Assembly: GCA_950097015.1 (NCBI GenBank)
Contig: CATNEN010000038.1
Coordinates: 5,146,001 to 5,210,000, forward strand
DNA from: Macrostomum hystrix
Lineage: Eukaryota; Animalia; Platyhelminthes
Reading direction: 5' to 3'
Length of the DNA: 64,000 bases
The position numbers were made by a program, and so were the translations under genes. The notes beneath the pieces are model-generated. The model did no database searches. It was not told the DNA's origin and saw only the letters and a list, made by a program, of their open reading frames with translations. The stretch's first letter is position 1, and the number at the start of each line of letters is the position of its first letter. This document shows positions 47,251 to 54,535 of the stretch, one piece after another.

Positions 47251-47979
47251 CCAAGGCTACAACCTCTCCTATGCTTGTACGAGAGCATATATAAGTAAAA
47301 AAAGTTAGTTTGATTTATATCTTCTACTTTGAATAAAAAACTTGAATAATTAAAAACCGTACAGTACAATAAATTTTCAGTATTTTGGTTTCTAGAGTCA
47401 ATGTTGTCACACAATGTTGTCAATTAACTGCAGCAGCAGCATTTCATTCTGAATTTTCTCTTTAGTTCTTCTGTATTCTCTTTGCTCTTTAGTAGTGTCG
47501 TAGGTTTATTAGTAGTATCTTGAGGTTTTGAAGTCAGTTTATTTCTGCAGCAGTCACTACAGTTTCGGTTATTTATTTTTTAAGAATCAAAAAGCAAACA
47601 AAATAACTTAAAATAAAAATATTTGATTAAAATTAATTAGTGTGCAGGTTAATAGCGTTCTAAACAAAATTAAAAAAATATCATTGAACCGTCGTTAGAA
47701 GTGCAAATGACTTTTTTCAGATCATTTTCATGACCTTAAAGAATTATAGTTGCTAATTAAAAATTACGCGTAAAAAATATTTTTGCTTAAAATTAATTAG
47801 TGTATCTTCAAACTATGAGCTATTTAAAATAGTCATTGTTTAGTCATTAATTTGATTATTGTGTGCTTTCTATGGTGCTTCAGTGCCGTTCTGAGAGAAA
47901 AAAGAAAATTTTTTTGCGAGAAGCCTTCTCTTTTAGTTAAAATTTTCTTTTGTTCAATTTATATGCCGACGTAGAGGAC

Positions 47980-50900
47980 TCAAACGGTCTCTCGCCGGTA
48001 GAGCACGCTGTCAAGCCATCCGACCAAAGCCTCAGCGCAATCCTCGGCTGTGGCGTCGAACCAGTTCTGCGGGACAATGTCGCCTCCGTCATCCAGTCGA
48101 TGATTTGCTAGCGCCTGGTAGCGCGCTTTCAATCTGTCATCCACCTGCAACGTCAATGCAAAGAGGCGAAGGTAGTGCAGCCTCATCACTATTGTTGAGA
48201 ATTTATATACCAGTATTTAAGCCATATGATTATTCGTCTCACCTGTCCGACGAGAATCACAAGCAGACGACGTTTGAATGTGTTGGCAGCGAGAAAGGAC
48301 TGGAACTCCACCTGTAGAGCTGCCTCATCCTTGAGCCAATTGAGCAGGTCATTGCTGAGCAGCAGCACAAACTGCCGAGTTCTCTTCATAAGAGAGCCAT
48401 TGAACCTGTCGGCTGTTGTGGCCGTGTCAAAGTTTTTGGGCCAGCTGGCAACCAGAGCCGCATCGTTGGTACCCAGTCGGAGACCAGAAAGTCGCCCAAC
48501 AATGTTCTCAATAATGGTGCTCGTTGTGCTGGACAGCTCAGCACAAGAACCAAGGACAGAGATAATGAAGACCTCACACACACCATCCGAGTGGAATGGA
48601 GGCCAGTCTTGGTTGCTGGGTTTCAAGGGGCTTCCTGAAATGCCCGAGTTCTCATAATATGGTAAAGTATAGAACACAATACGCAACCAACCCATTTAGA
48701 CCAACTATTGCACGGCTTGTTCAAAAACCATTCAGTTCAAGTTGAAATAATGGAATTGGTGCTTAATTGTCGCACTTACGAATGAATAGTTTTCATTTCA
48801 TAATCAAACTTCAGAAATCTTGGTTTCTTCAGAAATATTAGGCTTTCTACACAAAAATTTGTTTAAATTTAGCATGTTACGGTTTATTGGTTCATTTAAA
48901 AACCCCCCAGTTAATTTGGTTGCTAAAGCGACTTACTCAAGACCTCGCTATGTCGTTCAACGTCAATGATGAGGGGTGCTTGCTCGTCTCTAGACATGTC
49001 AGCCAATTCCGCAGGCGGCTCCGAAGCGAAATACTCAAAATTGCGCTCTTCCGGGACATGCTGAGCGATACTAGCGGAAGCAACCATGGCGTCTTTGCTT
49101 CGTATCCGCTCAATCAGCCGATACTCCCAGTCCACAGAGTTGTACACGATATCGCTGCCTGAGAGGATTCTTTGAAGAGTTTTGAAGCCCTGTACGTCTT
49201 CGGGTCCGAGGTGTCTCTGTCTGTGTAGCGAGACTCTGCGAGAGCTCAGACGCAGAAATACTATGTCTCTGAAAGGATTCCGACCTACATTGTCGAGCTC
49301 TCGAATCACCTGTAACAAGGCGAGGTACTGAGTGTCTAGGAATCTCTCTGACAGTGCCACCACCACCTTACTGCTGAACTTGGCTCCTTCAGCTGGACAG
49401 TCGAAGTAGGTGAGTGGCGATGAGCACAAATCCGAGTACAAGAAGCTCTCCGGAACGCACAGCTCGAGCTCGTCGCCTCCGGAAGCACCGCGCACGCAGT
49501 TTAGCACATCAACCAGGCAGTCCTGGTCTCTGTCGGCTGCCCACAGCATCGCATCGTAGGGAAGCGATTCGCGCAACATCTGCCGTTGCTGCCGTCGGTC
49601 GCGCTGGTACTTCAGGAGAACAAGAACTCGGACTACGGCGAGCAGTCTGTGGCGACGCCTTATGGCAAAACTCACGAGACAGAGCAGTGCAAGAAAGAGG
49701 GCTGCAGTTAGAACGCTCAGAGCGATCAGCTTCCGCTGTTCCACCGTCGTATTTTCCATGAGAGCGCACAATTTGATCAATCTGCCTTCATCGTCTACAG
49801 GATAGCCGCCGCCGCTTGAAGCGCTTAAGTACTTGCAGCTTTCTCTCCACCGGGCATTTTCCTTGTTTTCCTTGCAAGCGTCTATAATGGCTTGGTCGAC
49901 AGTGCACTCCATTTGCTGATAATCGGACACGATCTGACTTGTTTGGGAAATATACAGCAGAGTACTGTGTAATTTCATCCACATAGAATTGCAGGAACAT
50001 TGCCATGAATTGTCTCGTAGTGTGACTTCCATGAGACTTGGCAGGCAGTTGTTTTTTAGAATTTCAGAGTCAAGTTGCCGCATGTTGTTGCCGTGCAGTG
50101 CCAGGGTTTTTAGGGAATCAGCGAAAAAGCAAATCGAGTCCATGAGTAGACTCTGAATATTATTGTCGTTTAAAAATATGACTTTTAAAGCATGACTAAA
50201 ACGAAACGCGTATTTTTCTACCGAGAACACCTGACTGTTGTTTAAATACAGGAACTGCAACTCCGATGACATCTTTGGCTGACTCCATTTAAAAGTGCCA
50301 CTAGAAATTCGACGCAGGTTGTCTTGACTGGTGACGTTCGACATGTCGATTTTCTTTACTGGATAGTCGATAACGATTTGCGCAACTTCAAGAGGACGAT
50401 TTTGGCACTGAAGGTTCGAGAATCCCCACTCTTCGCTGTGGTAGCAGGAGCAGCCCCTCAGACAGGCCACCAAGCAGTTGGACGGAGACTTGTGAGTTCC
50501 GTTCTCAAATATGCAGTATTTGCTAGGCAGGCTCTGCCTCCAGCCGCGCTCAAAGTTGCACAGAAACTGGCTTGATTTCGCTTCTCGCAGCGTCTGGCTC
50601 ACTTTGCCCTGAGTCGGGTCAAATATGTAGCAGTGTGTTTCATTTAACTCGTTCTCTGGGATTCTGGGATAATTGTAAGCCGCATGATCCCTCCAGACTG
50701 TGCTCTCCTCTAGAAATATCTTGGAGAATACACTAATGCAATCACAGATGAGTTGTCTAGCCTGGCCTGTTACGTGCAGGACAACTCTTGAGCCGAGAGT
50801 TGCTCTTTGTGGCATGCGCATGCTGTCATAGTGGATGTGCTGCAGGTCATTGTTTGATAAGTCGACTGATTCCAGATGATGGGTGGCGTTAAATGAATCT

Positions 50901-53004
50901 TTCTCAATAGCATTAATTTTGTTGTTGGCCAGCTTGACTCTTATCAGATATGGAGACTTGGGCAGAGACTGCAACTCAATATTCAAAATTGTGTTGTTCT
51001 GTACGCTAATTTCCTCCAGTCGGTAGAGACTGCTCAACAGAAAGTAGGATAACTTGTTGTTGTCCAAGTTCAACTTAAGAAGACTTTTTGTGAGCAGCGA
51101 CTGCGAGAAGGCGACTTCGTTGATGTTGAGAATTTGGTTGCCCTGAAGGTGAAGCTCGGCAAGCTTGACCTGCGGTGAAGTGAGTTCAATGCAGAATTAT
51201 ATGCCATAAAGTAGTGGGGACAGGAATGACTCAAATTTAAGGTCAAACTATTCGATTAATCATCAAAGTTTTGAATGACATCAACTACTCACCATACAAA
51301 GATTAAGTGCTATCAAACGAATGTCTTAACTTGCCGCTACCAGCAAGTGCCTGGCTAGATCAACACTTCATTGCCTCAGTCTATAGCACTGTATGTCTAG
51401 GCATCGCACGTAGTGTGCCACTAATATTCTCAAAAGTTCCCTAAGTTGAGGCGGAGTATAGTACAGACCCTATCAACACGTTACATGTAAAATATTAGTT
51501 TGCTCATCCAAACCTGGTACCAAGGCTGAATTTCGCCAATCTGATCGATTTTGTTGTAAGACAGGTCTAGCACCTTCAGTACCTGCGCCGAGCCTCTGAA
51601 CCAATAGCAGTGTCGGTTAGGCCCGTTTTTAGTGCTGTTGTCTACAGGCGGAGGCCAGCAGATCCAATCGCGGTACAGACTGCTGATGTAGTTGTGACTC
51701 AAATTGACATGTTCCAGGTTGCTAAATAGACTGAGCGAGTAGGGGATTTCAGCGAGGTTGTTGAATGCCAGATTCAGGTAACTGAGACCGAGGCTCCAAG
51801 GAACTCGCTGGAGCTTGTTCTTCAGCTTGGAACTGTTGTGATTTGCCTGATAGCCGAACACCAAGGAGAAGCTGATATTCTCAGCATCCATCATATCGTA
51901 CAGGTAGGTTATTCTACTCAAGCGCCCAATGTCATTGTATATATTTTCTAACTTTTCTATGGCATTTAGTGTTAGATTATTACTCGAGTACGGCTGGTGA
52001 GCTGTTGGGCTCGACGTCTGTTGACTGTCGATAAAAATGTTTAAAGCTTCGAGCGCTACCTGCAGTGCATCGTCTCCAAATGTGGAGACGTTGCAGTAGT
52101 TCATGGTCAGGCTTTCGATGGCTCTGAGTGCCATGATGCCCTCTATTGACACCCAGGTGATCGGCGAGTTCTTTATCGAAATGCTTCGCAGCTGTGTGCA
52201 CCTGTGCAACACGTACACAGGTAAATACCATATGTCTACGCTGTCCATGTGAAAGAAAGTCAACCAACAGTCCGACTCGTTGAAGTCGTTGGGGTAGTTG
52301 AGGTCGACGGTGTAGTAGCCACCAACTCCAGGCCTCTCAGGAATGCCAAACTGAGCCACCTCCATTTTGTGAGTAAGATTCACACGCTCCAATTTGAGCT
52401 GACTGGGGCCAACATCCAGGCTGGTCACCTGGCAGTTCTCTACGGTCACATCAGGTGGCGGAAAAACCTGCAGAATATTGTTGGGTAATTCAAACTTTCA
52501 TATTTGAGATGATTCCCAAGTTTTCTCTCGAAGAGAACCCAGTTTTATATATTACGAGTGCGACAACTCCTCTGACAATAGCTTTCTCTGATTAAATAAA
52601 GTGCTCACACTTCTATCGTGAGCCTGGTAGTGCTTTCGAGTGAGTTCTCGCAGATCAACCCTCACACACTCGCGGCACCCGGAGCAGTTGATGGCGAGAT
52701 GGGCCGTGATTCTTCTAGAAACTTCTGAGCAGTTGATGGCGTGCTCAGGCCTGCGTTGGCTTTTGTCTGTCGCATTGTAGATCCCGCATGTGTAGTCGTA
52801 CTCAGACGGATGGCCGGAGTCGCAGAGACACTCGAACATTTCGTGGTAATTTTCGACGAAGAACACATAGCTGCCTTGGAGATTTTCTGCTGGTGTGGCT
52901 GACTGCTCACCGCTTGATTTCAGTGCTCCCAGAGGCGGGCAAAGCAGAAGGATTGCCAAGGTCAGTAAACACAGGTGAGAATTAGAAATGTCAACGCGTT
53001 TCAT
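47980..53004 (-). CDS. Toll-like receptor, multiple-cysteine-cluster type, with a degenerate TIR and a probable second TIR-like domain, about 1379 aa
   Basis: Exons 53004-52609, 52467-51514, 51169-48937, 48634-48243 and 48144-47980, all GT-AG with phases 0,0,1,0. Ectodomain: signal peptide, LRRs (LSYLNLAFNNL, LEHVNLSHNYI, LKVLDLSYNKI, LESVDLSNNDL), internal LRRCT/LRRNT (LICDC; CLRGCSC...LQC), juxtamembrane LRRCT (NSWQCSC). TM helix followed by RRRHR. TIR1 has YDAMLW and SSKVVVALSERFL; TIR2 has EVFIIS and RQFVLLLSNDLL. The first three exons are high confidence; joining of the last two is inferred. Confidence 0.85.
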
Positions 53005-53709
53005 CTGCTTCGTGTCCTGTTGGAAGCGGTGATGTTGAAAATGCTTTTTGCAAAACTAAGCTCGAACTACGACTTCACTCGCGTGGTCGCTTAATAACAG
53101 TTTACACGCAAATATAGCTGGAAGCGATGGATAAATTTATAAATGATTACGCCTTGATGTTCCAGCACAGACTGTGACACCATGGGCCAATTAAGCTTGT
53201 AGAACTTCTGTTTTAGCTACTTAGATTGTGATCGCTGCTAGTCCAATATGCTTTTAGCTATGTTTAGCTGGCTCTTCACTGTCGCCCTGGACGACGATTG
53301 GTGAGGTAGGAATGCTATAAGCACAGCTTAAGTAGGTATTTGATTCTAGTACGGAAATAGGAGATGAAATGAGAATGTGATACGGCTTTGTTCGTACGAC
53401 TTTTTCTTCTTTATAAGGGCTATCATGTTATTTGCGTTGGTGAGTAAATTATTTTTACACGAATACGACATACATATTTAGGCATTTAAAATATCATTTG
53501 AGTTGTACGAGCAGAAATACCTCTATGCAGATTTTTAAGACACAACTGTAGCTTATGCTACTTAATGTGATGTATTGCAACTAAAATAGTGGTATATTTT
53601 TGTTGTTGTTATATGGTTGTAGCATTCCTTGAAGGTCGAAAACTCGACTCCCAGCTTCACTGGAACAATTCGTGTCTTTTACAGACACAACTCTGCGTTG
53701 CTTCAGTTC

Positions 53710-54535
53710 AGTTCCCAGGTTTCCTGGTTCCCAGGTTTCCTGGTTCCCAGGTTTCCTGGTTCCCAGGTTTCCTGGTTCCCAGGTTTCCTGGTTCCCAGGT
53801 TTCCTGGTTCCCAGGTTTCCTGGTTCCCAGGTTTCCTGGTTCCCAGGTTTCCTGGTTCCCAGGTTTCCTGGTTCCCAGGTTTCCTGGTTCCCAGGTTTCC
53901 TGGTTCCCAGGTTTCCTGGTTCCCAGGTTTCCTGGTTCCCAGGTTTCCTGGTTCCCAGGTTTCCTGGTTCCCAGGTTTCCTGGTTCCCAGGTTTCCTGGT
54001 TCCCAGGTTTCCTGGTTCCCAGGTTTCCTGGTTCCCAGGTTTCCTGGTTCCCAGGTTTCCTGGTTCCCAGGTTTCCTGGTTCCCAGGTTTCCTGGTTCCC
54101 AGGTTTCCTGGTTCCCAGGTTTCCTGGTTCCCAGGTTTCCTGGTTCCCAGGTTTCCTGGTTCCCAGGTTTCCTGGTTCCCAGGTTTCCTGGTTCCCAGGT
54201 TTCCTGGTTCCCAGGTTTCCTGGTTCCCAGGTTTCCTGGTTCCCAGGTTTCCTGGTTCCCAGGTTTCCTGGTTCCCAGGTTTCCTGGTTCCCAGGTTTCC
54301 TGGTTCCCAGGTTTCCTGGTTCCCAGGTTTCCTGGTTCCCAGGTTTCCTGGTTCCCAGGTTTCCTGGTTCCCAGGTTTCCTGGTTCCCAGGTTTCCTGGT
54401 TCCCTGGTTTCCTGGTTCCCAGGTTTCCTGGTTCCCAGGTTTCCTGGTTCCCAGGTTTCCTGGTTCCCAGGTTTCCTGGTTCCCAGGTTTCCTGGTTCCC
54501 TGGTTTCCTGGTTCCCAGGTTTCCTGGTTCCCAGG
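53710..54535. repeat. 16-bp minisatellite (TTCCCAGGTTTCCTGG)n, about 51 near-perfect units
   Basis: Direct observation; explains three spurious ORFs. Confidence 0.97.

Follow-up and report, generated by a model that had tools for sequence, protein, structure and literature searches.

Toll-like receptors (TLRs) whose cytoplasmic tail carries two tandem TIR domains ("twin-TIR" receptors) have so far been reported only from bivalves (PMC6836662, citing Gerdol et al. 2017), and one survey found TLRs to be absent from Platyhelminthes, Macrostomum lignano included (PMC8609888). The TIR domains of human and mouse TLR4 and of two invertebrate TLRs are reported to make cyclic ADP-ribose (cADPR), and TLR2 and IL-1R9/10 keep the Glu that marks enzymatic TIRs with no detectable activity (bioRxiv 10.64898/2026.04.20.719644). 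Here we describe a TLR gene of the flatworm Macrostomum hystrix, encoded on the minus strand of a 64,000-nucleotide stretch of genomic DNA (assembly GCA_950097015.1, contig CATNEN010000038.1, positions 5,146,001 to 5,210,000), referred to below as the window and numbered from its first letter. An earlier, sequence-only reading had assigned two tandem TIR domains to the tail of this receptor (positions 47980 to 49570), a degenerate one (TIR1) and a SARM1-like one with a candidate catalytic Glu, and had proposed signaling through a fused, possibly NAD+-cleaving TIR rather than through MyD88 recruitment. The second tail domain proves to be a conserved part of a single transcript and is most likely another TIR, even more diverged than TIR1, a relationship that is probable but not provable from the data at hand.

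The region in question forms the 3' end of an expressed TLR gene with five coding exons, all joined by GT-AG introns, whose coding sequence comprises 4140 nucleotides (nt), i.e., 1379 codons plus stop, by exon arithmetic. Its parts, including the leucine-rich repeats (LRRs) of the ectodomain, are as follows.

52609..53004, minus strand: coding exon 1, with the start codon and a hydrophobic, signal-peptide-like N terminus (open reading frame [ORF], exon arithmetic, and contig ends; junction 52609|52467)
52468-52608, minus strand: intron 1, skipped in the spliced contigs
51514..52467, minus strand: coding exon 2, N-terminal LRRs of the ectodomain (Pfam; both junctions in contigs)
51170-51513, minus strand: intron 2, skipped in the spliced contigs
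48937..51169, minus strand: coding exon 3, 2233 nt, with further LRRs and cysteine clusters, the transmembrane helix, TIR1, and the acidic linker (Pfam, phases, and junctions)
49661..49732, minus strand: transmembrane segment, KLIALSVL...VSFAI, followed by the stop-transfer sequence RRRHR (read from the translation)
49064..49564, minus strand: TIR1, LPYDAMLW ... KVVVALSERFL ... VDWEYRLIERIR, a diverged TIR-like domain (hhalign, name of the homolog, and selection analysis)
48938..49063, minus strand: acidic linker that joins TIR1 to the second tail domain, poorly conserved (35% identity to the closest paralog, L002)
48635..48936, minus strand: intron 3, 302 nt, GT-AG, phase 1, skipped in contigs of four runs
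48243..48634, minus strand: coding exon 4, 392 nt, acceptor TTTCAG|GA, N-terminal 130 residues of the second tail domain (junctions in contigs)
48145..48242, minus strand: intron 4, 98 nt, GT-AG, phase 0, skipped in contigs of four runs
47980..48144, minus strand: coding exon 5, with the C-terminal 54 residues of the second tail domain, including predicted helices and a W..LYRR end motif, and the stop codon (contigs, exon arithmetic, and alignment)

This structure rests on contigs from four public sequencing runs of one study, each of which yields one spliced contig of about 4.4 kb when aligned to positions 47400-53200. All four contigs are identical to the window, with zero mismatches, and skip all four introns exactly, an agreement well beyond chance; the skipped stretches are bordered by CT..AC on the plus strand, that is, by GT..AG on the minus strand. 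The runs carry no RNA label, and their assemblies amount to 40-50 Mb, but intron-less contigs with GT-AG borders can have no other origin than spliced transcripts. Contig ends place the 5' untranslated region (UTR) up to about 53083-53135 and the 3' UTR down to about 47775-47845. The large receptor ORF (51073-48923, minus strand) contains the consensus donor TTGA|GTAAGT, and exon 3 ends there, at 48937, four codons short of the in-frame stop of that ORF. The reading frame passes into exon 4 in phase 1 and into exon 5 in phase 0, with no internal stop in any exon. The junction 48937>48634 is crossed in frame with at least 255 letters on each side, and no contig covers intron 3, although the contigs are compatible with a minor isoform that retains this intron and would end after TIR1.

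Because the spliced contigs carry the junctions that had been predicted from the letters alone, the gene model of the sequence-only reading is confirmed: both joins (48937>48634 and 48243>48144) are present in all four runs, the donor, the acceptor, the 392-nt exon, and the 98-nt intron lie exactly where they had been placed, the receptor is fused to the extra exons in one transcript, and the motifs EVFIIS, RQFVLLLSNDLLNWLKDEAALQVEFQSFL, and RLLVILVG are all encoded in exon 4. A public ortholog model from M. lignano (P0001; A0A1I8HBV3) ends in ...VTSKYNCQSFL; since its SK stands at the position of the AGTAAG donor of the window, this model probably reads into the intron and lacks the second domain.

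The extracellular part of the predicted protein is unambiguous at the level of domain families, with Pfam hits to LRR_8 in exon 2 (2.7e-12) and exon 3 (3e-14), as well as to LRR_4 and LRR_1, and its arrangement is of the multi-cysteine-cluster Toll type. A single hydrophobic stretch of 24 residues, followed by RRRHR in the translation, separates the ectodomain from the tail.

The second tail domain consists of about 185 residues, with the motifs DWPPFH, EVFIIS, RTRQFVLLLS, WLKDEAALQVEF, and RLLVILVG in exon 4. The search for genes of the same architecture, which the sequence-only reading had suggested, returned three paralogs of exon 4 in the same genome, L002 on the same contig (66% identity), L003 (29%), and L004 (29%), each with its second domain behind a phase-1 intron. 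All four genes share a common layout: a TIR1-like domain, the donor, the phase-1 intron, the acceptor, and the second domain, with a (D/E)WPP motif and a hydrophobic strand ahead of its remainder. The second intron is present in L002 and absent from L003 and L004, where the second domain is encoded in one ORF. Between the window gene and L002, the ratio of nonsynonymous to synonymous substitution rates (dN/dS) is 0.15 for TIR1, 0.47 for the acidic linker, 0.20 for exon 4, and 0.17 for exon 5, values that are rough because dS is near saturation. The second domain is a genuine component of this subfamily of four receptor genes and evolves under the constraint of purifying selection (dN/dS of about 0.2). 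Outside this genome, a HMMER search with exon 4 among 1.84 billion representative sequences found only one homolog cluster, a chimeric 2297-aa prediction from M. lignano (P0002), and a word-index search with the alignment of the second-domain family returned no match.

As for the first tail domain, its description as a degenerate TIR holds up well. Neither of the two Pfam TIR families (PF01582 and PF13676) matches TIR1 in any of the paralogs, even at E ≤ 10, the receptor yielding LRR hits only. In hhalign, the TIR1 family aligns over the whole domain with a canonical TIR profile, built from 12 single-exon TIRs of the same genome, at a P value of 6.9e-4 (probability of 27%); canonical TIR subgroups of this genome match one another at P values of 1e-5 to 2e-12. 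The ESM features of TIR1 are closest to those of TIR clusters (0.86-0.88), which serves as a lead only, and the TIR1/tail region is 73% identical to an M. lignano protein named "TIR domain-containing protein" in UniRef. By these profile comparisons, TIR1 is a degenerate TIR that is weakly but significantly detectable. It lacks the RDxxPG box, as had been noted before, and in the profile alignment to the canonical TIRs the column of the αC Glu is occupied by Ala or Leu, in agreement with the earlier statement that this Glu is missing.

Which fold the second domain adopts is harder to judge, and the earlier claim of two tandem TIRs is only half substantiated: a real, conserved, and fused second domain exists, whereas its TIR fold lacks significant sequence support and a confident model. 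The exons were searched and folded singly, so that the second domain of the window gene was modeled without its last helices. In the ESM comparison, the bacterial TIR_2 and ThsB clusters come closest to exon 4 (0.93), whose 10 best family-bearing matches all belong to one clan. The second domain is also colinear with TIR blocks in an hhalign alignment that is itself not significant, with EVFIIS corresponding to strand βA, KRTRQFVLLLS to βC, W-x3-E to the start of helix αC, and RLLVILVG to βD. In both AlphaFold2 (AF2) models, which are of low confidence, the predicted order of strands and helices is β-α-β-α-β-α-β(-α). Among the structural neighbors of the model for the full-length second domain of L003, TIR or SEFIR domains occupy ranks 1, 5, 8, 12, and 32 of 48,161 chains. 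The weak Foldseek hits of the L003 model also include the TIRs of MyD88, MAL, and SPARTA, alongside hits of the NSF/eIF4A type.

Several results count against a TIR identity. Pfam searches with every exon and paralog at E values of up to 10 found no TIR and only LRR hits, a PADLOC search with the second-domain family at E ≤ 10 found nothing relevant, and the same was true of sequence and profile searches of the PDB with either tail domain. In hhalign, the P value of the second domain is 0.032 with the TLR-type subgroup, 0.18 with the TIRs taken together, and 0.22-0.39 with the other groups; none of these is significant, since none survives correction for the number of profiles tried. The ESM match of exon 4 shares 152 of 256 features, whereas true family members typically share 170. 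The AlphaFold and Foldseek check proposed by the sequence-only reading gave an equivocal answer: the predicted local distance difference test (pLDDT) scores of 44.8 for exon 4 of the window and 43.3 for the second domain of L003 make both models unreliable, and Foldseek with the L003 model returned nothing at E ≤ 1e-3. The structural search with the exon-4 model gave ferredoxin-like noise and no TIR. There is also no evidence that the second domain arose as a duplicate of TIR1, the two families aligning in hhalign at a P value of 0.37.

Weighing both sides, we consider a TIR fold of the second domain, with scaffold and enzymatic versions taken together, to be somewhat better than an even bet. 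The particular account that we favor, a flatworm twin-TIR receptor in which the second domain is a diverged TIR and the tail acts as a scaffold, stands at about an even chance. It is preferred because the same tail layout recurs in four paralogs, dN/dS is low, the ESM leads and the colinear alignment agree, the genome encodes proteins with Death and TIR domains, and bivalves provide a precedent. From the N to the C terminus, such a receptor would comprise a signal peptide, an LRR ectodomain with multiple cysteine clusters, one transmembrane helix, TIR1, which appears to have lost box 2 and the αC Glu, a variable acidic linker, and the α/β domain of about 185 residues. Ligand-driven dimerization of the ectodomain would pair the tail domains, and the paired domains may then form a protein-protein scaffold for TIR adaptors, e.g., the Death-TIR proteins of the same genome.

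Candidates for such adaptors are indeed encoded. One ORF of 516 aa contains a Death-TIR combination in a MyD88-like layout (C38:30080434-30081027), and the region G000:C38:17955229-17996330 (17.955-17.996 Mb) holds five tandem gene copies in which a Death domain is followed by two TIR_2 hits (Death-TIR-TIR). Since the genome encodes Death-TIR frames, a MyD88-type route is available, and the proposal that the receptor signals by other means rather than by MyD88 recruitment is not supported. In genome-wide scans, PF01582 and PF13676 were detected in at least 18 and at least 42 places elsewhere, respectively, and at none of the twin-domain loci; a search that started from one canonical TIR of this genome and was aimed at a deep TIR profile produced no match.

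The strongest competitor is a lineage-specific, Rossmann-like α/β domain that is not homologous to TIR and serves the tail in another way, e.g., in docking, regulation, or trafficking. We regard this as unlikely on balance, though clearly the best of the alternatives. It accommodates the uniformly nonsignificant TIR sequence and profile tests, which contrast with the P values of 1e-5 to 2e-12 that canonical TIR subgroups reach in the same genome by the same method, as well as the absence of TIRs from the neighbors of the exon-4 model, the many non-TIR three-layer folds that appear at equal Z among the neighbors of the L003 model, and the single homolog cluster in the 1.84 billion representatives. 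Such a domain would not explain, however, why TIR/SEFIR domains, with their very small share of the library, include the top-ranking neighbor of the L003 model, why the ESM features point to TIR_2, or why the order and spacing of the blocks (βA; KRTRQFVLLLS as βC; W-x3-E at the start of αC; RLLVILVG as βD) fit those of a TIR. Its position directly behind a TIR, as in twin-TIR receptors, also speaks for the twin-TIR account.

The enzymatic version, in which receptor dimerization would turn on NAD+ consumption or the synthesis of a cADPR-type signal by a catalytically active second TIR, with TIR1 as its pseudo-TIR partner, appears improbable. Two acidic residues are relevant here.

48324..48326, minus strand: Glu of WLKDE, four residues after the Trp (W+4), the motif equivalent of the TIR αC Glu (paralog alignments, colinear hhalign alignment, and WLHRE of the SARM1-like TIR)
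48306..48308, minus strand: Glu of LQVEF, the candidate of the sequence-only reading, six residues past the motif-equivalent position (paralog alignments)

Judged by the W-x3-E spacing, which also occurs in the genome's SARM1-like TIR (WLHRE), the equivalent residue is the Glu of WLKDE rather than the one in LQVEF that had been chosen before. The W+4 position of the putative αC holds Glu in the window gene, L003, L004, and P0002, and the second position, six residues on, is acidic in all four paralogs (E, E, D, E) and likewise in the M. lignano homolog; both facts suit an enzyme, as do the ThsB-type TIRs among the nearest ESM clusters and the report that some TLR TIRs make cADPR (bioRxiv 10.64898/2026.04.20.719644). 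On the other hand, the TIR fold itself is unproven, W+4 is Arg in L002, the closest paralog, and neither AF2 model, with a pLDDT of about 44, is reliable enough to tell whether this Glu lies in a pocket. Moreover, the Glu says little about activity, because TLR2 and IL-1R9/10 keep it with none detectable (same preprint), so that its earlier use as a mark of an enzyme is not supported. The label "SARM1-like" fares no better: the second domain shows no significant similarity to the SARM1-like TIR of its own genome (BLASTP E value of 2; hhalign P value of 0.06), and a SARM1-like, NAD-cleaving identity is not supported by these comparisons. Slightly less probable still is the more specific conjecture that, behind a dead pseudo-TIR, the cryptic second TIR actively processes NAD+ through the Glu of WLKDE, so that dimerization would directly yield a nucleotide signal instead of, or besides, adaptor recruitment.

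The SARM1-like gene used in this comparison (L041; G000:C10:934000-940500, minus strand) encodes an Arm repeat and a TIR_2 domain, TRNFIVVLTPGALDRC...DWLHRELS, with a βC-αC region that reads TRNFIVVLT...DWLHRELS; a SAM domain was not found in the ORFs scanned.

Finally, the idea that an ATG-initiated downstream ORF (ATG at 48695) is a small gene of its own, or that the extra exons are untranscribed chance ORFs, is highly improbable: an ATG-started ORF of 168 aa does span exon 4, the runs carry no RNA label, and their contigs leave room for minor isoforms, but each run has an in-frame contig over 48937>48634 and none over the intron, the same phase-1 junction is kept in all four paralogs, and a separate downstream gene is rejected on the spliced contigs that link the receptor to exon 4.

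Upstream of the receptor gene, about 580 bp from its transcript start, lies a 16-bp tandem repeat, GTTCCCAGGTTTCCTG (window positions 53711-54535; 51.6 copies, 99% matches). This repeat is open in three frames, which accounts for the spurious ORFs of 290-340 aa in that interval.

A further receptor gene, L040 (G000:C1:26817706-26820300, plus strand), encodes in a single frame a signal peptide, LRRs (LRR_8, 1.1e-17), a transmembrane helix, and a TIR domain that passes the Pfam cutoff (PF01582, 25.1 bits) and has the box 2 sequence HDRACIPG. By its predicted domain content, L040 is a canonical TLR. Two ORFs similar to L040 are located at C29:2727844 and C38:8428662.

These observations bear on the reported absence of TLRs from flatworms. 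The window gene and its three paralogs represent transcribed Toll-type receptors in a Macrostomum-type genome, with tail domains that seem to have drifted below detection by the domain models used in surveys, and L040 further contradicts the absence of TLRs from the phylum (PMC8609888). Because receptors with undetectable tails exist side by side with the Pfam-detectable L040, the "loss of TLRs" in flatworms is at least partly an artifact of detection. Should the second domain turn out to be a TIR, the twin-TIR layout would reach beyond bivalves; the tandem tail also lends itself to asking how much divergence a TIR can tolerate without ceasing to signal. An enzymatic role is speculative, and the idea of a TLR tail with enzyme activity has lost its conceptual novelty, given the TLR TIRs reported to make cADPR.

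Among described systems, the cryptic TIRs, such as that of BCAP (PDB 5for), and the regulatory TIRs of the SIGIRR type show no detected sequence relation to the receptor, and their matches fall within the noise band of a model of low confidence. The resemblance to the SARM1 TIR is confined to a short stretch of βC and αC, TRQFVLLLS...WLKDE in the receptor and TRNFIVVLT...WLHRE in the SARM1-like gene of the genome, with Glu at W+4 in both; unlike SARM1, the receptor has neither ARM nor SAM domains, lacks the SARM1-type βC-αC loop, and gives no significant alignment. As in the multi-cysteine-cluster (P-type) Toll receptors, exemplified by Drosophila Toll and Toll-6, a signal peptide is followed by LRR blocks with intervening cysteine clusters, one transmembrane segment, and a TIR-type tail, whereas TIR1 of the flatworm receptor has no box 2 (RDxxPG) and falls under every Pfam threshold, and a C-terminal domain of about 185 residues is added. 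The twin-TIR TLRs of bivalves, which are spiralian like the flatworm, share with this receptor an LRR ectodomain, one transmembrane helix, and two tandem cytoplasmic tail domains. Pfam recognizes both bivalve domains (PF01582) but neither of the flatworm domains, the second of which is not proven to be a TIR; in contrast to the bivalve receptors, a variable acidic linker and a phase-1 intron, the latter conserved, lie between the two flatworm domains.
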